From Lytechinus pictus (lineage: Eukaryota), in NCBI RefSeq assembly GCF_037042905.1, contig NC_087249.1, positions 39,184,001 through 39,248,000 of the forward strand: a DNA stretch of 64,000 nucleotides. Reading direction: 5' to 3'. The position numbers and the translations under genes are program-made. Positions 1-15,805 of the stretch are shown piece by piece. The notes below the pieces were generated by a model. The model saw nothing but the letters and a program-made list of their open reading frames with translations. It was not told the DNA's origin and did not search any database. Every line of letters begins with the position of its first letter. Position 1 is the stretch's first letter.

Positions 1-993
1 ACGTACATGTATGACTTTCATACAAAGCATTATCCAAGGTAGAGTTATGATTCACGGTAGATACATAGAATTAAAGCCAAAACAATAGCAGATTTGTAAT
101 TTTTTAAATCATGCATTCGGTGTAGTATTTTCAGTCAGTTTGTAACAATTAATGCTTATCAATCATACCATACTACCTGCATAATGATACATTTACAAAC
201 AGTGTGTAGGGTTTAAAGAAAAGGTATACACTGTGACAAATATACATAACTTCTCTTCACTTCCATGATCTACCACATGGTAAAGGAAATGCCTCTCTTG
301 TAACTCATATAGCCTGCATGTATTATGAAATTTGTTGAAATACTTTCAATTATTTCATTGCATAATTCTAGCTCTATTTATCATTTTACTAACATTGGTA
401 CATATCTCAGAAAACAGTAGACTCTTATCTACATTTTATTCATTCAAGGGGTGAGAGTTTTTTTTTTACTTTTGGGTAGGTGGTATCAGATAATAGTTAC
501 AAATCTCAATATACTTGTAATATATACATGGATACACGTACAAACATGAAATACCAGAATTTGGATTCTGTAATAATGATAATAAAAAGATAATGTCAAA
601 ACATTTTATTTTAAAAATATGAAAATAGACAGTGTCAGTGAAATATTTACAGCTTGCTTTTTAATGATATTTATAAAAACAAGCACGTACATGTATGACT
701 TTCATACAAAGCACTATCCAAGGTAGACTTATGATTCATGGTAGATACATAGAATTAAAGCCAAAACAATAATAGCTGATTTGTAATTTGTAAAATCATC
801 ATGCATTCAGTGTAGTATTTTCAGTCAGTTTCTAACAATTGACGCTTATCAATCATTATACCATAATACCTGCATTTTGATACATTTACAAACAGTGTGT
901 AGGGTTTAAAGAAAAGGTAAACACTGTGACAAGTATACATAACTTCTCTTCACTTCCATGATCTACCACATGGTAAAGATAATGCCTCTCCTT
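1..993. repeat. Direct repeat with ~684-bp period in the 3' non-coding region of the Helentron
   Basis: 1-300 (acgtacatgtatgactttc...atgcctctcttg) recurs almost identically at 685-993. Confidence 0.85.
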
Positions 994-1136
994 GATAAAT
1001 TTCTTTCCAATCAAACAAACATTATTGTACTCTTTGTTTTTCTGTTATCTGATTTACCAATTATTTCACTCTCACTGTATAAAAGTTTGTACTTAGAAAC
1101 ACTTTGTTTTAAACTAGTCTTCTTTACCATACAAGA

Positions 1137-4100
1137 TTATGTATTACTTGAAAGTTGTACACAGGATGAAGGGATAGCTACATATACCATCTTATGGTAA
1201 CTGTAATGGCTTTCTAATGTCCCACTTGACAGTTTGTTTTCCTCAATATTTGTAAATACCAAGTCAATTGTTGTACATCCATTTGTTGTGAATTCACAAA
1301 TAAGTTGTGTACATTTGAATAACTGTGTCATTGCATTCACAAGCTTTTGTTTGTTTGGAGTAGAAGTAAGCATATTGATATTGAAATCTCCCATGATAAC
1401 AAGTGGTTCATTTGGGTTAATATAATTACCCAAGTGTTGTAGTGCTCTGTGAATTTTTCTCCAATTTTCTTTAGGACGACAATACATAGAAACCACTTGC
1501 AACTTAGGACTATGAGAAGGAAGCTGAACTACTGTCATTTCAATTGACTGGAAATTACATGGAACAACTGTACATTGCAAGCCTTTCCTGTGGTATACAG
1601 CACTTCCATAGTGTGTACGTTGTGAGCTAAAGTCATTTCTTGACATCTTGAAATTATCCATTTCATACTCACATGCTTTATCCATAGAACACAGTTTTGT
1701 TTCAACAAATAAATTGATATCGGATACCTGTAAGTTGAAGTATTTTTGTATGTCTTTCATATGAAGGTGCAATGACTGGCAGTTGTGGAAAGCTATTTTG
1801 ACACAATCTTTTGGATAGTCATACAATGGCTTGTAGCAAAGAGTCATTGATTTAGACTGTCTCAAACGTTCCATTTCTGTCATCACATCATCTGAAACTT
1901 TGATATGAGCCAGGTTTAGAGGACCAATGATATGCAAATTTTGTAATGATGGCACTCTACTGAAAGCAACATAATGAAGATGGACAGCCTTTCTGTCAGG
2001 TAATTGGACAACTGCTCTATCTAGAGTGCTTCCTTGAGCTCTGTGTATTGTTTTAGCACATGCTAATTGGAGGGGGAATTGTTTTCTTGATACTTTCACT
2101 GCTTTGTATCTCCCAATTGCAAACTCTCTGGCTATTGGTTTAATTGGTGTCCAGGACTGATGAATCGCATTGTTGGTATGTTTTGGATATTCATGTCTCA
2201 GTTTGAGCCCTGTTTCTTCTGTCTCAAAAAGTACCCATACTATTTCCACATTCCCACTCTTGTCATATTGGAAATATTTTGAAACACATGCTGCTCCATT
2301 AACTAATCCATCTGCTGTGTCTATGTTGACAGTTAGTTCAGCTTTGAGCTCTAAAGCAAGATTGCATGTTTTAGATAGCCCCATTTCTTTGGCTTTGGCA
2401 CATGACAAAACTTTTTGCTTGACTTCATCTGTGATATCACCAATAACTATGTCATGAGATGCCAAGACAGCTTGGTTTGCTACACTACTGTGTAATTGCT
2501 TGTTATGTGCATCAACAGCCTCATTGTGATACAACAAATGAGTGACATCAACTGGGTAATTCTCATCTTCTTTAGAGATTATTCTACCTTTTAGTAATTT
2601 AATGTCTTCTTTGGTTTGCTTGCCTTCTCTCATTCTGTTCAACAATGCTGCATAAGCTACATCTTCTTTTTGTCTCATAATGTCTGTTAATTCAAACAGC
2701 TCGAAGTTGTTGGTCCATACATTTGGTGCCAGAACTTCTGTACTTGATGTAGTAGTTGGATTTTTAAAAATCCAAGTGTCCATTACTGGCTGCAATTGGA
2801 AAAGATCGCCAATAGCTATAATACTGACACCTCCAAATGGTTTTGATACATTCATTACTTCTTGTAATCGTTGGTTTATGAAGCAAAACATCTTTGTTCC
2901 AACCATAGATATTTCGTCGATGAATACAAGCTTCAATTCACCAAGTTGGGTTCTGAGGGTGTTGCGTTTGTCATGTGATAAAGGTTTATAGCTAAAACCT
3001 TGGTTAGCAGGAATGCAAAATGCAGAATGGAGGGTTTGACCCCTGATCAAATAGGCTGCTTTACCAGTAGGTGCTGTGAGGAGTACCTTAATTACATCTG
3101 GATTACTACCAGATTCTGTGTTATAATGCCTCACAAGTGCCTGGTATAGTGACTTGATTACTCTTGTCTTTCCAACTCCTGCACCTCCACTCAAGAAGAG
3201 GAGTAACTGTTCATCTGAAGTTTTCACTTTGTTTAGTACATGATTAAAGAATTCAGATTGCTTTTGATTAAGAGAAGAAACAATTTCCCTGAATTTACTA
3301 TCAGACAATCTATTTCTGATTCTCTCTTCTTGCATGTCTGTTCCAGTCGATTGTATACCCAATTCAGAAGCAATATCATAGCTAGTGAAGAGATCTTCAC
3401 CTTCTATAGCATTTCTATCTTTGCCAAACTTATTTGCATTTATCTCATTAATATGTTCATTGCAAGGAGCTACATTATGAAGGTTTTCTTCATTTGAGTC
3501 ATTAAGCAGTTTTTGTTCAGCCATATCTAACTCTTCAGCATACTGGTTGTACTCTTTCTGTTTTTCTTCTATTACTTGTTTTACCATTTGGTATCTTTCT
3601 TCATATGTTTGGCAGTTTCCAATGATTTCACTCTCACTGATGTAAGGGTAAAAGAGCATCAAATTTTCTCTGTAGTAATTTTCTGGATCTTTTTCTTTGT
3701 CATATCTCACATAGCGTATCACTTTTTGCTTTTTCCTTTGTTTCATAATCACTGTGTTTGAGATTTTCAATTCACCAAGACATGTTTGTTTATTTTGATA
3801 TAGATCAGAGTCATCAGGTTCATCTTCTTTGTTATCATCACTGTCTGTTTCAGGCAGTTCTAATTCATGCACTTTTCTCTTCTTCTTGAACTGTACTTTT
3901 TTCATATCATACCATGCAATGAAATCTGCTAAGCACATGTCCCGGGCCTTCCTTGGCCGTTCTGAGTATCTCTTGATGTTATTGCTGCACTGAATGTCGT
4001 CACTATCAGCAGGCAAAGCATCAAGTTGCTCTGAAGGTTTGAGTATAAAAGGTCTCTGATCTGGAGGTGAAGTGTTAACAAATGCATGCCCACATGATGA

Positions 4101-5152
4101 ATGCTTTAGTGGCATTTGTAGAGAGAGATATATTGCTTCAGGTGCACTAATCTCAACATTTTTAAGAAATTTGTTTCCAATCAAACGAACTTGATCTTTG
4201 ATATCAGTTGATCCTTTTCTAGCTTCATCACATGTTCGTCTCAAGAGTTCACTCATGCCTCTTTGGCCTTTAGAAACATAGTTCACAACATACATTGCAC
4301 AAGCATAAGCATTGGTAATGAATTGTATGTCTGTATTTGCTTGCCATGCCTGGAGTACAGCAGGGTTATACGCATTCACACGTACATTGCATGGTTCTCG
4401 TTTGAGAAACACCTTTGAAGCTGAAATAGAACTTCTGATTGCAAGCTCATAATCATCAGGTGAAATGCCAAAATGGTCAAGAAACAGTTGAAGAGTAAGT
4501 TGCTGGATTTCAGGTTTGTTTAGTTCAATTTGTATTTCTTTCCATTTCTGTTTATGTAACTGCTTTTCTTTGTCTTCCATTTCAACTGGCAGAGGTTGTA
4601 AGATCTTTGTAGACTCCATAGGAGGCAATGGGAAATTGAACCTGCACACTTTACCCTTTTTTCGACAAGTATGTGTGTGTCTGTGACATTGCAGTTTTTT
4701 CAAGTTCTCATTTACACCCAAACTTTGTCCGTCTGTTTCAATGAAGTTGTCAATGTAATTTTCAATGTCTGAATTTGAATCTATCTCAAATTTAGGGGCC
4801 CCATTCACCCACAGAAGACTGTGCAGATGGGCTGATCCTCTATGTTGGAACTCTATCCTGTAGAAATGTTCTGAAATTTTCCCAAGTGGCTCACATGAAC
4901 CTTGAAGGAAATTTTGATAGAATTTTTTCACTCTGTGATCAAAATATCTTGTGACAGTGACAGGATCTGATCGAATAAGTCTATTTTTTGTTTCCCAAGT
5001 GAAACTTGAAACATCTTCCGCACTATACTGTTTGTTGTCAACAAGTTTACCCAAAGATATTAAGAGATCAGTCCAATGTGACTCAGCAGAAGACAAAGAA
5101 ATAAACCATGTTGGTAATCCTAACTGTCTAATCATTGCAAACAGATCCTTTT
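1137..5152 (-). CDS. Helentron RepHel protein, C-terminal part: HUH Rep catalytic motifs, PIF1-family SF1 helicase, exonuclease-endonuclease-phosphatase (AP endonuclease) domain
   Basis: ORF 1137..5282. Rep motifs [51 protein letters not shown]. Helicase motifs GGAGVGKT, PTGKAA, FIDEISM, GDLFQLQPV, FPLQLACAKTIHRAQGSTL, YVAFSRV. EEP motifs HNCQSL, ETK, GDFN, TIDLVF, SYH. The first 44 aa of the called ORF come from the inserted element. Confidence 0.93.
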
Positions 5153-6236
5153 CAGTCAGTCCGCAAGCCCCTGTGTTAATGAGCAAATGAGCAAGATTTA
5201 TCCAAGTCCTCTCGTGGCTGAATTCATGTCCCTGCAAAATCTCGTGAATTATGAGACTTTTTTTATCAAAGAATTTAACCACTTTCTCCTTGAATAATAT
5301 TGATTATTTTTGTACCATGGGCAAGAGTAAATGTTACTCTTTTATATTGGTCATTTCTTTTGAATGAAATATCTTAATAAATAAGTGTATTTTTTACCTG
5401 AAAAGATGCATCAAACAGAATTTTCTTCCTCTGTTTTCACTTGCAAATTGTGCAACATTTTGTGTTTTAGGCACCAACATTATTTATATGATCAGAAAGC
5501 TCAAACTCTATACTTTCTTACAATGTCACTCTTGATATGTGGCATCTTTTAGATGGGTCAGCAGCCAGCTTGTTCCATCAAGATGCAAGACGAGATTTCT
5601 GAAATTTCTGAGTAACATACAATCCAGAGTTCTGATTGGCTCAATACTGTTTTCAAAACAAACAGGCGCGGGTAATTTGAAGAGATTACCACATGGTGAG
5701 TGTGACCTTGCAGAGGCCCAGTGTGGGGAACATTGGAATTTGAGTGGGTGTGTGGTCCCTTTGACCAATCAGAGCGCAGTATTCTTGTTTTTGAGCTGCA
5801 AAATGTACTTGGCCTATGAAAAGCTGGCTGCTGACCCATCTAAAATACATCTTCTTATAAAAATTATATCATATTAAAGCTTAGATCTTCAGCTTTATCA
5901 TGATTTAAAAATCATTTGTGCCCAAACAGAAATTAAGTGTGAAAACAACAACTTTTGTTGCATGAAAAAAAATATTTTGTTTCATGTTTTAGATCAAAAG
6001 TTTTTCCTATATTACAACATTCTTTTAAAAATCCAAACACATGACCTGAAAGAATGATTCTTCTTCTTTACAAAGATACCAAAAACATGAAATTTGGTCA
6101 ATATTTAGAGCAGCAATGGCCGAATAAAAAGAGGTGTTTTGGTTCGCACCAAGCTCATTAACTATGCAAAAACCCTCTAGTCATGAATATCACTTGGATA
6201 AAAGAAGCTACCTTTTCAGGGCTTGCGGACTGACTG
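5153..6236. mobile_element. Non-autonomous TIR DNA transposon (MITE) inserted in the Helentron ORF
   Basis: Perfect 18-bp TIRs CAGTCAGTCCGCAAGCCC (5153-5170) and GGGCTTGCGGACTGACTG (6219-6236). Flanked by T4 and T5 where the uninterrupted codons need only T5, implying a 4-bp TTTT duplication. No transposase ORF. Superfamily not assigned. Confidence 0.92.
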
Positions 6237-9200
6237 TTTTTGGCTGTTTCCCAGTATGGTGGAGATCCTCTTAAAGTTCTGAAAATTCTATATCCTTCAT
6301 CTAATTTGACCATGGAGTCAACAACATCTTGTTGTTTGACATCTCCTGCAGTATATGACTTGCCTGATGTTTTAACCCGCCTTAGTGAAAGCCATATCTT
6401 ATCTTTGATCTGTTTCATTTGGAGTTTCTTGCATTTGAAAAAGATGTTTGTTACAGATTTTGCTGCTCTTCGATCAGAATGTCGTAATTCTAATTTGCAG
6501 ATATCACTGTACTTGAGAGGTATTTCTCTATCTTTGTTACTTGGCCTTCGTTCCCCACAAAATATAGTTGGAAATGATAATTCCTCAATATCAGCCTGTA
6601 ATGAACTAATTGGTATATTTCCCTCACTGGGTGCAAAAGAGAGAATGTTTTGTTGATCATCAACATTTTGTGGATACAACATAGTGTCCAAACTTCCAAC
6701 AGGTTCTTTTTCATCAATTTCACTCCAATCAGAGTCACTATCTTTTTCTTTCTCCTCGGTTTGGGAAGCAGAAACATTAACTGCAGTAGGTACTATGTTA
6801 TCTTCACAAGTGCTCTCTTCGAGAAACTCTTTCCATTGAGTTTTATGCATTTCTGCAACATGAGTTGGCCAAAATTCATCTAAACCGTCTGTAACATATT
6901 GTTTAAACAGAGGCTGTTTCACTAAGTATTTTGTTGCTTCAAAACACTTCTGTGGTCTGATGTTTTCAAACATGTAATGACTTTTGTACCGAAGACGTTT
7001 CTTTAGTTTTACAGGGATGGTATGTGAATCATTAATAGAGCGAGGCAGTGAATTTACAATTGAAATATTGTTGGCAGGAACATTAACAACATTCCCACGG
7101 ATTCCAACTTGTCCACCACTTGGCAACTCACGAAGTTGGAAAAATGTATTTACTGGGGAAACCAGCCTCTCTTCAAGTGGGTTTAGTTGTAGCTCTGTTG
7201 GACAATGAGGAAATCCAGTTCTATTAGCTGATGAAAGTGGGGGGAGTTTATTCTTTAGCATCCAACTTTGACAAGTGTGGCAAATCCATTCTTTGCCTTC
7301 AACACTTAATGTTCCAGTGATACACTTTGAGTGAAGAGATTTATCAGTATTCCTAACAACAAACACATCATTAACAGACTGTTTAAACCATAGCTGCTTG
7401 CAGCATGTGCATATATACTCACATGCTACTGATACTGCTTCTTTAAAGTGCTCCACAAGTTCATCAATTGTATTGGAGGGAAATCTGTTGCTTTGTTTAC
7501 GTAAAGCGTCATCTTTAGATTCTTTCTCTCTGTATGCTGGATTGCTTCTCCTTTGTTTGTTGATGTTTCTCTCAAATTCTTGGAATGACGGAGCTCTTCT
7601 TCTCTTTCTATTGTTTCTTTTTTCAATTTCTTTATATTCCGGATCTTGTCGTCTTCTCTTCTTGAGGTTACTCTCAAACTCTTGGAAGGATAGATCTCTT
7701 CTTCTTGTTTTGTTTTTTCTTTGTTCATTATCTTTGTATTCCGGATCTTGTCTTCTACTCTTCTTGAGGTTACTCTCAAACTCTTGGAAGGATGGATCTT
7801 TTCTTCTTCTTTTGTTTTTTCTTTGTTCATTTTCTTTGTATTCCGGATCTTGTCGTCTTCTCTTCTTGAGGTTACTCTCAAACTCTTGGAAGGATAGATC
7901 TTTTCTTCTTCTTTTGTTTTTTCTTTGTTCATTTTCTTTGTATTCCGGATCTTGTCGTCTTCTCTTATTGAGGTTACTCTCAAACTCTTGGAAGGATAGA
8001 TCTTTTCTTCTTCTTTTGTTTTCTCTTTGTTCATTTTCTCTGTATTCCGGATCTTGTCGTCTTCTCTTATTGAGGTTACTCTCAAACTCTTGGAAGGATG
8101 GATCTTTTCTTCTTCTTTTGTTTTTTCTTTGTTCATTTTCTTTGTATTCCGGATCTTGTCGTCTTCTCTTCTTGAGGTTACTCTCAAACTCTTGGAAGGT
8201 TAGATCTTTTCTTCTTCTTTTGTTTTTTCTTTGTTCATTTTCTTTGTATTCTGGATCTTGTCGTCTTCTCTTATTGAGGTTACTCTCAAACTCTTGGAAT
8301 GACTGATCTCTTCTTCTCTTTCTATTGTTTCTTTTTTCATTTTCTTTGTATTCTGGATCTTGTCTTCTACTCTTTTTGAGGTTTTTCTCAAATTCTTTGA
8401 AGGACAAATCTCTTCTCCTCTTTCTGTTTGCACTTTGTTCACTTTCCTTATATTGTGGGTCTCTTCTTTTCTCCTTTCTGAGTGTCCTTTCTAATTTTGT
8501 ATAGGAAGAATTCTGTCTTTGCTTACGCTTGTATTCCATCATATAGGTCTTTCTTAGGTTTTGAGACAAGTGTGTATTAGCAACAATTTGTCCAATTGAC
8601 CTTGATAGCTCTTGAAAGTTTGCTTGAGAAACAAAGTATGAACTGAGAGTGTCTAATCTTTCAGTTGGGAATGGTATAACTTTGCCTTGCTGTAAGCACA
8701 ATTTGAGATGTTGTCTGATTTGTGAATTGTCAAATCTTTGAGTTTGTGGTGGCACATTGAACAGACAGCTAAATGCAGCAGCTATTGCAAAAGCTCCACA
8801 AGCTGGTTCAGTTTGTTGGGTTATTGGAATGTACTCTATATGCACAGCTGTTCCATACAATAGATTGATTTGAGGCATTAAATGCTTAATTCTGTCCTGT
8901 GAAGACAATGAATCATACACAGATACTCGATTGGTGGAAGGGTCATATGAGGATGTGACCCAATGGTTATCAACATGATGGAAGTTGATACAATGTTTAT
9001 CTCTAGGAATATCAATAGAAACTCCTTTAGAAAGAAGAACTTTCATGGCTGCAGGTGTCACTTGTCCAATGTATTGATCTAGTTGTGGACTATGATTTTT
9101 CATAATTGATACAGCTTGTTGTATGACATCATCAGGGATGTATGCTGCGTATTCATCCACTGAACTCATAGATTCTTTATTTAGATTCGACAAGGATAAG

Positions 9201-9871
9201 TGTTTTTTGTGAGTATTATTATTACTGATTGCAGTCAGTTCTTCTTTCCGTTGCTGAGTATTCACACTGCCAATATTACTCTGACCATGAGCACTTGATA
9301 AAATGCTATGACTCGGGGTTTTATCATTCTTGTTCACAGTGGTAGTGCATTTGTGACTTTTGAACTTTTGATAAGTACTAAACCTTAGGTTGCAAGCATG
9401 ACAGTATGAGCATTTATGCTGAAGAAGTCTTTTCTGGGTTGAAAAGCTTTTACAGCAGTTAGTACATTTACAACTTCTTAATTCGTCACAGAGATCTTGA
9501 TCATTAGAAGGTACTTGTTTAATGCACTTATGTAAGCTTATTTTTTGCTTGGAAGGAAAAATATTTCCACATTGTTGACATAAACAACATTTGTGTAGTT
9601 TCATCTTTTGCTTGGTGGAGAAATCTTGCCCACATTGTTTACACAAAGTGCATGTATGACTTCTGAAAGCTTTCAAATACTTGTAAGTTTGAGTGCATTC
9701 ATTGCATGTGAATATGTTGCCATTGTATATATGGCTCCCTCTATTTCCTACAAGAAAATGATCTTCGTGGAATCTTTGTGTCAGTGAGGAAATAATACAA
9801 GTGACATTGTTAAAAGAAATATAACAGAACGCGAACAGCGTCAGGGTAAACATGTAAACAAAATAAGACAT
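6237..9871 (-). CDS. Helentron RepHel protein, N-terminal part: C-x2-C-x12-H-x-C finger repeats, Ulp1/C48-like cysteine protease, 34-aa charged repeats, Cys-rich domain and start of Rep
   Basis: ORF 6158..9871 ends with ...[19 protein letters not shown], which joins in frame to [11 protein letters not shown] once the 5153-6236 insertion and one TTTT copy are removed (7647 nt, 2548 aa). The true start may be on a spliced upstream exon (candidate acceptor ttttcttgtag at ~9748-9758). Confidence 0.88.
7560..8460 (-). repeat. Coding tandem repeat with 102-bp unit (2 x 17 aa; RRRQDPEYKENEQRKNK / RRRKDLSFQEFESNLKK), about 8 units
   Basis: The c(c/t)ggatcttgtc motif recurs every 102 bp from ~7639 to ~8353. 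Confidence 0.95.
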
Positions 9872-12825
9872 CCTTATATATAGTCAAGGTTATAATTGAG
9901 TATCAGGAGAATCTAGTTGAGATTACAAATGAGAAACCTCTGGAAAGTGACTTTGTTCATTTCTCCTTTACAGATGCCTTTCAGTAGTATCCATATACCG
10001 CAAGCAAAGTACTGTCGAGTGTAAGATTCTTTCTGTTTCAGTCAGTGCATTGAAGTGTTGCCCACGCAAAAAAAACTTGGAATACTTTGTATCCTGCAGT
10101 CTGAGGTAAAAAAAAGAAAATCATTGACTTTTAACACTGTACAATGTGTCTGTTCATACAAGGCCAAGGCTAAATATCTACTTTTGAGAGATTTTGAGTA
10201 GGTGTAATTCTATACTGATTAGCAATGAATTGATAAGTAATTCTGTTAAATGCCATTAATTATGATTATCCTCATTAACATCATCTCCATCTTTTTAATC
10301 AATTATTTCTTGAGTATTTATGATATAAATTGATATTATTGGGGTTATCATTCTTTTTTATCACCATTATTACATTATTCATGTATTATTAATTTGTTTG
10401 TGTATGAAATGATAATAATTGCTTTTTATTTAAATAAGCGGTAATTTTAAAACGAAATTCAATCTTTGTCATAAAATGATGTGTCAAAGTGAAAGAAAAT
10501 AAGAAAAGAGAATAGTGAAAGTTTAGCTTATATTTGGCCGTAATAATAAAATTCATCAAATGTGATTGAAACTGTCTTTTTGTTACCGTCACTGCATTTT
10601 TAAACTAAATGTAATTATACTGACAAAGATTTTGTTAATGATATAAATTTGTTCAATCCTTGGCCCAATAACTTTTGAACATTTTGTATCCTGCAATTGA
10701 GAATAGAAGACTGTTCATACTGAAACACTATAATGCCTTTATATACACCAAATGGTTATTTGCAGTTTGCATAAAGATATAGACAAATCCTGATGCTTTT
10801 GAAGTATATTGTATTTCTAAGAAAAGAATAAAGTACCAAAATAATGCAAAGTTTGATGTATTCAAATTTCTTACCAAATTGATTTGATTCTACAGAAAAT
10901 TTTCCCCTTTATTTTGCACATTACACATGTTTTTTTGTGTCTAATGTTGAGATTTGATGTAATCTTTATGTAAATGCAAAATCTATTTAGCTTAAAGTTT
11001 TGAGTACTCTTGATCTCATTGATAAGTACATACATGTATTTAGTCATGTGCTCGTACATCAGATCAATGTACTCGAATTCACAGTTGAATACCTACATGT
11101 AATTGTAATTAAACTCTCGTTTTTCATCTTATTTTGACATACTTTTGCAAATTGAATTCCATCTAATTTTATCTTATGATACTAAATAATGAAGGTATAG
11201 TATAATTCATTATCATTTTAATAACACACTGAAGTTTAGATTAAAACCTTCATTCATTTAGTAGCTTTCTCAATTATAATTTTAAACTGGAAAAGTGTTT
11301 ACCATATGATTAGTGATGAAAAGATTTTTCAAACTTGAATTTGCTTCAAATCAACCTCATCAAACAGATCACCTGTAATTCAAAATACAGAAGAAAAAAA
11401 TTTGTCAAAATTAGAATACTCATTCACTGTCAATTCAAATGATTGTTTGCTTTTTGCATACAGATTATAAAAATTAAGACCTAGTATTCTATAATAGAAA
11501 TACATATTGTTTTAATTTCCAGTTTAAATATGCAATCTAACTATCTAAGTTTGTTTTATTAGTATTTCAATTTTCAAAACAGTTAATGTTCACTATTGGA
11601 AAAAATGATATAATAAATCACACATTCAAAATTTTTATAGAAAATTAATACAAAAATTTCATAGACAACCATTTTCATTTCTTTCATTTATATTACAAAG
11701 CAAAATTGAATATAGTTTATACACTATTTTGCCTAACAAATTCCATATTGTATTATTGCCAATAATAAATTAAATTCAATTCTTTACCCAAAATCAAAAT
11801 TTGACAAACTTATCAAATAAATAAAAGAATAATTTTGAAATAAATTGAATTCTGTATATAAATGCATTGAATGACTTTCTTTCATGAGATACCAAAAATA
11901 TATCACCTACAAAGCCAGCTTATTATAGCACCAAGTCAAGTATATTAGATAATTTTTGATATCTCATTATAAAAGCATCCAATATGGTTAGAACTACTGT
12001 ATATATTTTCTGTTTAATCCTATCATTATGTGTATGCAAAATATCCATGCTTTCTTGAGTGCATCATACAGTCCTTAAGACTCTGCATAAAATCATACTA
12101 TATAAAGAGAAAATGAATTGTACTGGAAGTACATGTAACGCATAATTGGTAGACAAGAATAAAGAAAATAGATGGAAGATATTATTTGATAGAAAGAATG
12201 AAGCTGTATACAGTAACATCCAGAACTGTTCACCTTCTCTTTTTAGAGTATGATTTCAATGCAATGTCTACACATGTATGATTCTTTGAGCACCCATTAT
12301 CTAGAATGCAAGATAATTTGCTTTTCCTAAATCCTATATTTAAGTATATTGTTAGTTTCCCTTTCCTAGTGCCGTTCTATAGGGAGTATAAGCGACTTAT
12401 TTACTGTTGAGGCTTTCCTCGATCGCACCACCATACTCCAATACTAGGCACCGTGTTTCTTTATTTCAATTGTGTATGACCGAAATTCTGTATTCATACG
12501 CCCTATTAGGACTGTTGGACTTCAGCCACTGGCTTCGGCACGTACTAGCCCAGAATTTTTCTAACAGGTCATATTCACAAGGGTACACTTAATACATCAA
12601 TTTAAAATAAATCCAAACCTAATGTAGTAAAGAGAGCAATCAAATTCTGGATTAAATTTCCAACTTATAGAATTGTTTTTAAATCTCAAAAATTTTGAAA
12701 TTTAAAATTAAATCTATAAGTGTCAAAATAAATCCAGTATTTAACTGTTTCTAACTACAGTCAGTTTGGATTAATTTCAAATCCATGCAATGTAGTGTGT
12801 CTACTAACAATTCTTCAAGATGAAA

Positions 12826-12952
12826 ATAATCTATTGAAGAATGAAGATAATCTATTGAAGAACGAAGATAATCTATTGAAGAATGAAGATAATCTATTGA
12901 AGAACGAAGATAATCTATTGAAGAATGAAGATAATCTATTGAAGAACGAAGA
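12826..12952. repeat. 21-bp tandem minisatellite (taatctattgaagaa(t/c)gaaga), about 6 copies
   Basis: Read directly. It lies just downstream of the predicted Helentron TSS on the minus strand. Confidence 0.92.
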
Positions 12953-12979
12953 ATACATGTAACTTCTGCTACTATTGGC

Positions 12980-13605
12980 GTCAATGAAATATCTGTCAAA
13001 TTTCACTCCTATTTATACATTTTACAGAGACCCTCTGCACCAAGTTTTCATCCAATCAAATTGTCTTCCTACAAACAACCAATCACCTTTAAAGACAAAA
13101 AAAAGAACCAATCAAAATCAAGATCCAAATGTTCATTAAGCTCATTTGAATATGCAAAATTTATTCATGGCCACTCCTCAGGTGTTTATCTCGAATTAGC
13201 AGCTGTTTTTAACTGAAAAACAACTTTTACAATGAACAAACAAGAAATGTACATTCAAACAAACAACATTTCTAATGTATTACATTTTTAGGTCAGTGCA
13301 CTTGTACTTTCATGACCACAACATTCCCAAAGGTCAGCTAACCCAAACTTTAACATAATCTATACAAAACAGGACCCTAACCTCACACTTTCAACCAATC
13401 ACTGTTCTTGAGATTTGCCTATAATGCAAATAAGGATCCTAAGCACACTTGTGTCAACCAATCACTAAACATATATATCATCCAATCCCTTCACAGCAAA
13501 GTCCACCAATTGCATTGCTTATCTATTCTGCACTGACTAATTGGAAATGACACTAAATAATAAAGATAACTATTTGCATATAATTTGTATATTATGCAAA
13601 TAATG
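12980..13605 (-). promoter_or_regulatory. Putative Pol II promoter of the Helentron: TATA box, Inr, clustered CCAAT boxes and octamer motifs
   Basis: Minus-strand TATAAATA at 13010-13017 and Inr-like TCATT with +1 at ~12985, 32 bp downstream. CCAAT at ~13052, 13079, 13108, 13395, 13458, 13482 and 13506. Octamer ATGCAAAT/ATTTGCAT at ~13424, 13572 and 13594. Confidence 0.55.
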
Positions 13606-13621
13606 ATTTAGTTTTATGCCA

Positions 13622-13658
13622 ACCTAGAAGGAATCTTCAAAACAGATTCCTTCTAGGT
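13622..13658. other. Perfect 14-bp stem-loop, candidate Helentron terminal/subterminal palindrome
   Basis: ACCTAGAAGGAATC (13622-13635), 9-nt loop, GATTCCTTCTAGGT (13645-13658). Confidence 0.7.
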
Positions 13659-13799
13659 CTGCATACAATTCAACTTTTTCATGCCTTTACCCACCATACA
13701 TTTATGTGACCCTATTCTCATTAAAATCCTAAAACTAGTTTAGTCCAAACTACTGTAATAAAGGTGCACTAATGTGAATTAGCAATCTTCCAAACCAAT

Positions 13800-15688
13800 T
13801 TCAAATGCACCATCCCAAGAAGCCAATTGATTTTGAGGTCAAATTAATAGATTTAAATTTTTTTTTGGTGTGTCGATAGATGACACCAAAATACACGCCA
13901 AGTTTAGAGTCCGCAGGTCAAAGGTCAGACCTCATTAAATATGCGAGATGGTTTCCGCATGATAATTTATAAAATACCCAACAGATTTAAAAAGTTTGTG
14001 GTATGCAGGTTGATCAAACCAAAATACAGGCTTAACTTCAAATTCAGAGTCCGCAGGTCAAAGGTCACAGCTCATTAAATATGCAAGTTGGTTTCTGCAT
14101 AACTTATGAAATATTCAAGAGATAGAAAAAAAAATTGGTGTGTAAATAGATGACACCAAAATACAGGCTTAAGTTTTAATTCGGAGTCCGCAGGTCCAAG
14201 GTCGCAGCTCGTAAAACTTGCAAGTTGGTTTCCGCATGATCACTTCTGAAATATTCAACAGATTTAAAAAGTTTTTAAGGGGAAGGTTGATGACCCCAAA
14301 ATACAGGCTAAGTTTGAATTCAGAGTCCGCAGGTCAAAGGTCACAGCTCATTATATATCCAAGTTAACTTTCGAAATATTCACCAGATTTAAAAAATGTT
14401 TAGTGTCTCAATAGATGACATCAAATGACCTGACTTTCATATCTTCTATTAGAGATTATTATACAAAGGGCGAGCGAGTCTTTAGGTCAAAGATCTAAAT
14501 TTCTTCATTATACAGTGCGTATCAAAAAAAAGTTTACACTTAGAAAATTATACATTTGTCATATCCTGAAGATTTTTCCACATTTTAACATTTGTACAGA
14601 TCCATTTAAGCAAATGACTATATAACTGTCAAAAAACATTTCCACTTGAGTGAGCACCACTTACTTTTCAAAAGTTAGTCAATAATGATTCGCACAGAAC
14701 TTTCAAATAGTTATGCGAATAAAAGTAGACCTTTAATAATCATGAATAACACGTCGAATTTAGCTAGTAAAATTGATTGTAAGATATATTTTACCTTTTG
14801 TATTTTGTTTCCTTTCCCAAACTACTTCAAGGTGTGCATTGCACCCCACCCCACACACCGAGGCCATTGTGACAATATTTGCTTTACACTTACATGTAGC
14901 TGTGATTTACATAAAATGGCTTAGGCTTGATTTTCATTTTGTCAATCATTGTCAAGCTTGGGAAAAGTGTGGAGAAACATGTATTTAATAAAAAATGAAA
15001 TGTAAACCCACTATAAATGATAAAAACTTAGTGAAAAAATACTACAGATATCTGGTATAAACTTTTGTTCAGATTCACTTATGTCCTCAGATCCAGCTGA
15101 CACAAAAAGAGTAAAGGTTGTGTTAATTAAGTGTTAAAATTTCAATTTGAGTGGTAAAATGGTTAGAAAATGCTTGAATGTATCCGATTTATTTCAATTG
15201 ACTTAAAGTGCAAGGAAAATGTAGGAGAAATGTTTCGCAGGGTAAGTTTGATTTCGCCCTTTCCCCTTGACACAGCGTACAAACAAGCATTTCTGTGCAA
15301 ACAGATTTCTGCGAGCTTTACAAATCGGACAGTGCTCACTCAAGTGTAACATTCTGTCAAAACTTTTACTTTCATTGGATAGATGAGACCCAAACCCATG
15401 ATTATATGTCAAAAAATTACCCACATGGTGTATATTTTTTACTTCCCAGGGCGTTTTCAAAGTGTAAACTTTTTTTGATACGCACTGTATATATGCATAT
15501 TGGTTTCTACATGATTTTAAGTTCAATCATATTGAATGAATTTGTGATTACATTAAGCGAGGGCGTCTGTATCCTTTAGACAGGTCATATTTCTAGTTCA
15601 ATTATTCAATACCCGTTTTCAAACTCAGCACTGCTGCTTGCTCTGATCGCGCAATGCAGGCGAGACAGCCAGAGGCGTTCCACTTGTT
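13800..15688 (+). mobile_element. HINE-like (non-autonomous Helentron) fragments with ~139-bp internal tandem repeats, ending in the family 3' terminus
   Basis: gagtccgcaggtc(a/c)aaggtc recurs at ~13907, 14047, 14184 and 14322. The 3' end ...tgcaggcgagac..ccagaggcgttccacttgtt (15655-15688) is shared with 25732-25765. Confidence 0.55.
14513..15487. mobile_element. Tc1/mariner-type MITE
   Basis: ~29-bp TIRs CAGTGCGTATCAAAAAAAAGTTTACACTT and its reverse complement, flanked by TA (14511-12 and 15488-89). Confidence 0.9.
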
Positions 15689-15805
15689 ATTTTGTTCAAT
15701 TTATTTTTCTAATTTTTGTATTATTCTGCATGTAATTAGTAATATCATGTTTATTTGTTAAGTTATTTTCAAAAGTTTGTATTATTCTGCATGTACAGTA
15801 ATTGG

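Follow-up and report, generated by a model that had tools for sequence, protein, structure and literature searches.

A compact Ulp1/SENP-like protease domain of clan CE within a Helentron polyprotein of Lytechinus pictus

The window considered here, a 64,000-nucleotide stretch of the Lytechinus pictus genome (NCBI RefSeq assembly GCF_037042905.1, contig NC_087249.1, positions 39,184,001 to 39,248,000 of the forward strand), carries at its left end a copy of a Helentron, a rolling-circle transposable element (Table 1). The N-terminal part of the Helentron polyprotein is encoded in an open reading frame (ORF) of 1237 amino acids on the minus strand and contains, after a group of zinc fingers, a domain which an initial annotation, made from the sequence alone, had taken for a Ulp1/C48-like protease of clan CE rather than one of the OTU type. 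Profile searches, a predicted structure and a survey of relatives bear on this assignment and on the possible role of the domain in the element.

The motifs cited in the initial annotation were recovered exactly on the minus strand of ORF 6158..9871, with the catalytic residues intact. The stretch HHVDNHWVTSS begins at residue 298 (window 8948-8980), VSVYDSL holds Asp320, which together with Ser321 forms the D-S motif, and the stretch QQTEPACGAFAIAAA, with its Gln-Gln...Cys-Gly, begins at residue 352 (window 8774-8818). The resulting order, His303-Trp304, Asp320-Ser321, Gln353 and Cys358-Gly359, within residues 298-366, is that of clan CE, and all catalytic codons fall within the interval 8660-9080 to which the protease had been assigned. 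The domain (residues 236-410) follows the zinc fingers (residues 56-175), in agreement with the annotated arrangement of a protease adjoining fingers in a Helentron polyprotein.

Searches with the single sequence yielded little. In a Pfam scan the domain scored 14.1 bits against Peptidase_C48 (PF02902) over the His...Asp region, with an E value of 0.044 and a gathering score of 20.7, and a phmmer search of the single domain against PDB sequences gave nothing meaningful, only chance matches to ribosomal L21. Four relatives (L011, P0002, P0055 and P0005) likewise fall below the Pfam C48 threshold, and one from Xenopus (P0009) clears it with 49.3 bits. Word-index searching of proteins with the domain alone as query gave a single foreign relative (P0001, 48% identity), and two more distant paralogues in the same genome, L011 and L012, are 30-32% identical to the domain. 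A profile built from four of these sequences matched in the PDB the Ulp1-like SUMO protease of Chaetomium (6dg4, 5.5e-7), and all the remaining matches were to SENP1/2/3/5 or to bacterial CE deubiquitinases.

An exhaustive profile search produced 6908 cluster representatives at E <= 1e-3, of which 2597 reached E <= 1e-10; 71 representatives showing 19-58% identity to the window domain constitute the alignment and profile A2. All 36 PDB sequences matched by the A2 profile belong to clan CE, including 6dg4 (9.7e-11), SENP1 (4e-10), Ulp1 (5.5e-9) and SENP8/NEDP1 (1.8e-7), together with SENP5, SENP2, SENP3, ChlaDub1, RickCE, OtDUB, XopD/NopD and pS273R of African swine fever virus (ASFV). In the alignments, H-W, D-S and Q...C-G coincide with the SENP1 catalytic residues, and an N-terminal L-x-D-x-x-I motif coincides with the 'WLNDEIIN' helix. 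In the A2 columns the His is invariant and the Trp, Asp, Ser, Gln, Cys and Gly are each conserved in at least 90% of the relatives; this conservation, together with the alignment of these columns to the catalytic residues of SENP1/Ulp1-like enzymes, makes the motifs more than a chance occurrence. A feature search of the ESM-Atlas led to Peptidase_C48 or C5 clusters, as well as to clusters lacking any Pfam family.

An AlphaFold2 model built with A2 reached a predicted local distance difference test (pLDDT) score of 91.2 and a predicted template modelling (pTM) score of 0.86. The Foldseek comparison proposed in the initial annotation was run on this model: the first approximately 45 matches in the PDB were all to clan CE proteins, the best being SENP5 (1.7e-8), with no OTU match. 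SENP5, SENP3, SENP1, SENP2, NEDP1 and Ulp1 were among the top matches of both Foldseek and VIA-align. The latter superimposed the model on SENP5 with Z 16.7 and a root-mean-square deviation (rmsd) of 2.6 A over 163 residues, followed by SENP3 (Z 16.0), NEDP1 (15.7), XopD/NopD (15.2), Ulp1 (15.1) and SENP1 and SENP2 (both about 15), the whole range for SENP, NEDP1, Ulp1 and XopD extending from 16.7 to 14. Structures of SENP, of NEDP1 and of the dual SUMO/ubiquitin proteases XopD/NopD tie within 1.5 Z units. Viral CE proteases also occur among the structural matches (ASFV S273R, Z 13.8; adenain; I7L).

Membership of the Ulp1/SENP/NEDP1 type of clan CE is therefore well supported by profiles and the modelled fold, despite the failure of the single sequence to reach the Pfam cutoff, and the assignment to a C48-like rather than an OTU fold stands. 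The domain shares with Ulp1, SENP and NEDP1 (MEROPS clan CE, family C48, PF02902) the fold (Z 15-16.7, rmsd 2.6-3.3 A over about 165 residues), the His-Asp-Gln-Cys order with its H-W, D-S and C-G motifs, and the N-terminal L-x-D-x-x-I helix motif. It differs from them in its compactness (about 170 residues against about 220), in its low identity (11-18%), in a Tyr replacing the first tunnel Trp at the 'WLND' position, in a conserved C-terminal signature of its own (M-R-x-H-L and F-P), in being embedded in a transposase and in scoring below the Pfam gathering level. Two other protease families were considered and rejected. For OTU (PF02338), the His precedes the Cys here, and there was no match in Pfam, PDB profile or fold searches; for VTD (Herpes_teg_N, PF04843), Pfam gave no match in the window or in the sister-copy protein, nor did the other searches.

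The protease region occurs in six near-identical copies in the genome. Two of the element copies, on contigs C1 and C2, carry a single ORF of 2582 and 2650 amino acids, respectively, compared with about 2548 codons for the window copy, and are 99.3-99.7% identical to the window outside a repeat array. Both encode, in order, five C2HC fingers, the Ulp-like domain, 34-amino-acid basic repeats, DUF6570, the Rep domain (Helitron_like_N), a PIF1 helicase and an AP (apurinic/apyrimidinic) endonuclease. Rep (HUH), PIF1 helicase and C-terminal AP endonuclease follow one another in the sister ORFs and across the two window ORFs, the arrangement by which Helentrons (HLE2) are recognised, and DUF6570 is a conserved N-terminal domain of their transposases. 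The claim that the protease is fused to the rolling-circle transposase holds for the two sister copies, in which the ORF is continuous at more than 99% identity, but in the window the frame is interrupted at 5153-6236. The Helentron family, judged from its copies, appears to be young and recently active, and the copy on chromosome 1 (C1) is about 17.4 kb long.

Table 1. Features of the Helentron copy in the window, with residues numbered along ORF 6158..9871
Feature	Position	Strand	Basis or remark
Helentron copy extent	1..15712	-	blastn to three sister copies; left part runs off window edge
5' non-coding leader	9872 to ~15712	-	blastn to sister copies
N-terminal polyprotein ORF	6158..9871	-	Helentron coding ends at 6237; last 26 codons read into insertion
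Five tandem C-x2-C-x12-H-x-C (C2HC) zinc fingers	9347..9706	-	residues 56-175, N-terminal to protease; regular expression on translation
Ulp1/SENP-like (clan CE) protease domain	8642..9166	-	residues 236-410
His303	8963-8965	-	catalytic
Trp304	8960-8962	-	follows His303
Asp320	8912-8914	-	catalytic
Gln353	8813-8815	-	oxyanion
Cys358	8798-8800	-	catalytic
Gly359	8795-8797	-	follows Cys358
102-bp tandem array, 8.8 copies (34-residue basic Arg/Lys-rich repeat)	7560..8454	-	Tandem Repeats Finder (TRF)
DUF6570	6905..7255	-	residues 873-989; Pfam PF20209, 50.9 bits
Secondary insertion, 1084 bp	5153..6236	.	splits Rep (Helitron_like_N) region; absent from copies L015, L016
C-terminal polyprotein part	1137..5152	-	rest of Rep/HUH, PIF1 helicase, AP endonuclease
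Rep/HUH remainder (Helitron_like_N)	4812-5150	-	Pfam 68 bits
PIF1 helicase	2607-3272	-	Pfam 96.5 bits
AP endonuclease (Exo_endo_phos_2)	1188-1631	-	Pfam 31.5 bits

The interruption in the window is a non-autonomous terminal inverted repeat element, with inverted ends of 18 bp (CAGTCAGTCCGCAAGCCC) and a duplication of TTTT. It represents an abundant, high-copy repeat that is transcribed elsewhere; many RNA-seq reads match it on both strands, and they end loosely, exactly at 5152/5153 and 6236/6237. The Arg/Lys/Glu-rich 34-residue repeats between the protease and DUF6570 vary in copy number among the element copies, which give offset blastn matches in the array. P0001 shows a weak match to STPRs in the equivalent region, which makes a DNA-binding role possible. 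For the regularly spaced fingers, of the C2HC and not the classical C2H2 kind, no Pfam family was found above threshold, with a weak zf-C2H2_6 match for P0003 only, and the finger region also precedes the protease in P0003, P0016, P0023 and P0072.

No other ORF of at least 90 amino acids occurs in 9872-15200, nor any further ORF of at least 100 amino acids elsewhere in the C1 copy, and the element therefore carries no separate OTU or RPA gene of that size. The element ends are approximate, as they derive from homology between copies, and the 3' end lies outside the window. Its 3' region (window 1-998) consists of tandem repeats of about 450 bp with about 90% identity, and the 5' leader contains a 47-bp stretch (12864-12910) with a repeat number that differs between copies; internal arrays of this kind are typical of Helentron/HINE elements. 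A partial element copy (L005, C2 42024443-42025015), in which an open frame of 529 amino acids covers the protease, is found some 7 kb upstream of, and in the same orientation as, the intact copy on C2 (L016). On contig C10 (13037755-13045146), three matches of about 40 residues (L008-L010), which correspond to the domain's C-terminal helix/PFP part at 67-68% identity and are spaced 3.3-3.9 kb apart, look like a tandemly repeated fragment.

Domain architectures were surveyed for the best 150 of the profile-search representatives. Helentron proteins, or N-terminal pieces of them, with the same finger region comprise P0001, P0014, P0151, P0038 and P0044, P0021 and P0069 from Lutzomyia longipalpis, P0039 and P0163 from Mya arenaria, and the finger-linked fragments P0003, P0016, P0023, P0041 and P0072. 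One of these fragments, P0003, comprising fingers and a Ulp-like domain at 58% identity, is followed on the same strand, after 92 bp, by P0166, a protein with DUF6570, Rep, PIF1 and endonuclease domains which is 67% identical to the window Rep/helicase. The Ulp-bearing Helentron architecture is shared by P0014, P0163 (Mya arenaria) and P0021/P0069 (Lutzomyia). Four sand-fly proteins (P0021, P0069, P0153 and P0154) combine an N-terminal VTD (Herpes_teg_N) domain with a pair of Ulp-like domains whose tetrads are all complete; the pair lies in tandem between DUF6570 and Rep, or is divided, with one member there and the other after the endonuclease. The Ulp-like domain does not keep a constant place in the polyprotein: it may precede DUF6570, stand between it and Rep, or follow the endonuclease.

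About 45 of the 150 representatives have a different architecture, being small proteins with a C-terminal PHD finger, those of sea urchins also carrying an N-terminal ALS2CR8 domain. In a maximum-likelihood tree of the 71 A2 sequences two sides are separated with good support (SH-aLRT 94); since the tree is unrooted, this split is a bipartition and not a proven clade. One side (29 sequences) contains every Helentron- and finger-linked sequence, with Helentron-borne copies from an echinoderm, a bivalve and a sand fly, and the other (42 sequences) every PHD-linked one. Loss of the catalytic residues in sister elements would have spoken against a protease; on the Helentron side the His, Asp and Gln are retained in 29/29 and the Cys in 28/29, other phyla included. 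The PHD-linked family may consist of host genes or of domesticated transposon genes. L011 (1219-2817, minus strand) and L012 (349-2103, plus strand) on contig C21 are paralogous genes encoding a Ulp-like domain followed by a PHD finger, and they are 76% identical to Strongylocentrotus purpuratus LOC115925466, which has an N-terminal ALS2CR8/CARF domain. In the Diadema relatives P0005 and P0007, Ser replaces the catalytic Cys.

The N-terminal place in the polyprotein was also examined in the 120 closest Rep/helicase relatives of the window element. An OTU domain is present in 28/120 and a VTD (Herpes_teg_N) domain in 37/120, both in the same N-terminal place upstream of DUF6570, and the gene models of the remaining 55/120 show no recognisable protease; neither Pfam C48 nor the A2 profile detected the present domain in any of the 120. 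The expectation that Helentron proteases are usually OTU is incomplete, VTD being equally common among the close relatives (PMC9741609). On the Rep/helicase tree the protease type changes many times, with 8-10 changes each, and the Ulp-bearing elements fall in at least three places, two of these elements being long branches of unsure placement. The emerging picture, drawn from these sequence comparisons, is of a modular protease slot in Helentrons that three unrelated folds, OTU, VTD and clan CE, can fill, the CE-type module being old within the group but patchy in its distribution.

Helentrons have been described with OTU (Thomas 2014, PMC4067079; PMC6431247) and VTD (PMC9741609) proteases, and zebrafish Helentron VTDs were demonstrated experimentally to be ubiquitin/NEDD8 proteases that do not cleave SUMO (Erven 2022, PMC9741609). 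The present domain resembles the OTU and VTD modules in its location upstream of the DUF6570-Rep-PIF1-endonuclease region and in the conservation of catalytic residues in autonomous elements (PMC4067079; PMC9741609). It differs in fold and in the order of residues, His-Asp-Cys against Cys-before-His in OTU and Asp-x-His in VTD, and whereas VTD activity has been measured, the present domain is known from sequence and a model. Transposase-linked Ulp1-type proteases are also known from Ginger1 elements, which carry OTU or Ulp1, with or without a PHD finger, and from Mutator-like elements (KI-MULEs) (Bao 2010, PMC2836005). Ginger1 thus swaps OTU and Ulp1, sometimes with a PHD finger, and the tree counterpart of the present domain is PHD-linked. 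However, Ginger1 and Mutator are cut-and-paste DDE transposons with a C-terminal protease that is detectable by Pfam/CDD, whereas the present element is of the rolling-circle type, with an N-terminal protease belonging to a separate clade.

For Helitron-like elements as a whole, the HELIANO study (2024) lists Peptidase_C48 among 20 domains 'stably included' in them (PMC11417382), and places it, without further analysis there, in ORFs other than RepHel (PMC11417382), whereas the present domain lies inside the RepHel ORF. A Pfam-based survey may have missed this sub-threshold clade. Our literature search found no link between Helentrons and SUMO proteases beyond that C48 listing. What is new here is an in-frame CE-clade protease module in Helentrons that scores below the Pfam threshold, the presence of C48 in Helitron-like elements being already known. 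To our knowledge, among the cysteine proteases of Helentron, Ginger and Mutator elements only the VTD type has been biochemically tested so far.

Given the fold, the catalytic residues, the position in the ORF, the retention in different phyla and the modular relationship with the OTU and VTD domains, we consider it probable (roughly 70%) that the domain is a catalytically competent, compact clan CE protease of about 170 residues, integral to the polyprotein of a recently active Helentron, which fills the OTU/VTD slot and serves as an isopeptidase in trans. We infer that such an enzyme would remove a ubiquitin-like modifier, whether SUMO, NEDD8 or ubiquitin, either from its own transposase or from chromatin or repair factors of the host. 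This would take place where the fingers and the Rep/helicase engage DNA and would thereby favour transposition, to the benefit of the element. The small PHD-linked relatives are more in keeping with an enzyme that acts in trans and is linked to chromatin than with one that processes in cis.

Several observations weigh against this interpretation. The single sequence scores below the Pfam threshold, and family membership rests on profile and fold evidence. The copies within the genome, 98-100% identical in the protease domain, are too alike to measure selection on it, and the window copy itself is broken by the insertion. Two ribosomal RNA-depleted RNA-seq runs of the same species, of which about 6% of the reads were sampled, gave zero reads on the Helentron ORF; the low-depth contig sets X1/X5 do cover the Helentron, and as their library type is not known they have no bearing on transcription. 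Furthermore, the structural scores for the model fail to distinguish CE enzymes specific for SUMO, for NEDD8 or for ubiquitin, and the near-equal Z values of the SUMO, NEDD8 and dual SUMO/ubiquitin enzymes point to no single modifier. Analogies with the other modules lead in two directions: the exchange of position with OTU and VTD hints at ubiquitin or NEDD8, and the occurrence beside VTD in the sand-fly Helentrons hints at another specificity, SUMO for example.

These two directions correspond to more specific proposals, each of which we regard as possible but tentative. A deSUMOylase might counter SUMO-dependent heterochromatin or Piwi-interacting RNA (piRNA) silencing at the element's own locus, as the best structural and profile matches, to the SUMO proteases SENP5, SENP3, SENP1 and Ulp1, would suggest, together with the adjoining zinc fingers and the presence beside VTD, in the sand-fly Helentrons, of a domain that would not duplicate the ubiquitin/NEDD8 cleavage found for zebrafish VTDs (PMC9741609). 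The near-equal scores of NEDP1 (Z 15.7) and XopD/NopD (Z 15.2) reduce the weight of the SENP matches, many CE enzymes are deubiquitinases, and the Helentron ORF was without reads in both RNA-seq runs. A deubiquitinase or deNEDDylase, analogous to OTU and VTD, could instead shield the transposition proteins from proteasomal turnover or cullin-based restriction; it is favoured to about the same degree by the N-terminal slot shared with OTU and VTD in the closest relatives, by the frequent protease switches on the tree, as expected of interchangeable modules, by the finding that Ginger1 transposases carry OTU or Ulp1 and never both (PMC2836005), and by strong matches to NEDP1 and OtDUB/ChlaDub. 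The coexistence with VTD in the Lutzomyia elements speaks against simple redundancy, however, and the best matches are to SUMO proteases.

Cleavage in cis, in the manner of adenain, ASFV pS273R or poxvirus I7L, of the 2500-residue protein into finger, Rep/helicase and endonuclease parts appears unlikely. Polyprotein processing was the alternative offered in the initial annotation and has been proposed for the Helentron OTU (PMC4067079); the protein is very long and multidomain, and viral CE proteases that process polyproteins do appear among the matches. Yet it gained no support here: a search for Gly-Gly sites gave only three pairs in the 2582-residue protein, one inside DUF6570 and two inside helicase motifs, and the linkers contain no such pair. 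The pair in DUF6570 (motif L-P-S-G-G-Q, window ~7012-7017, residues 953-954) is retained in 6/10 aligned Helentron proteins. Moreover, the close paralogues, small and PHD-linked, offer such a protease nothing to process, and the place of the domain in the polyprotein varies. Less probable still is an inert domain carried along by the element, either a captured piece of a host gene or a pseudo-enzyme, with no role in transposition, even though Helitron-like elements often capture host fragments, the HELIANO study treats extra domains as captures that are possibly dispensable (PMC11417382), and nearly half of the close relatives (55/120) have gene models without a recognisable protease. The domain is retained whole and in frame, tetrad included, in echinoderm, bivalve and insect elements at 20-58% identity, and the Helentron-borne copies occur together on one side of the tree, indicating long retention in the transposon lineage.

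The most far-reaching proposal, which we put forward as speculative and rather improbable, is that a previously unrecognised Helentron clade of compact Ulp-like enzymes, below Pfam thresholds, acts as a locus-targeted deSUMOylase, brought to its own DNA by the C2HC fingers and basic repeats and stripping SUMO from the heterochromatin/piRNA silencing machinery or from repair factors. If true, Helentrons would encode an anti-silencing enzyme complementing the ubiquitin/NEDD8-specific VTD and OTU modules, with which it could coexist.

The young family, with two intact ORFs of about 2600 amino acids and more than 99% identity, is a practical source for identifying the modifier in a recombinant test, and the A2 family profile would allow a survey of elements missed by Pfam-based pipelines. 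For Helentrons, a third unrelated fold, that of clan CE, can fill the polyprotein slot, and the occurrence of three folds in one slot suggests that the removal of ubiquitin-like modifiers has been selected for in rolling-circle transposition.

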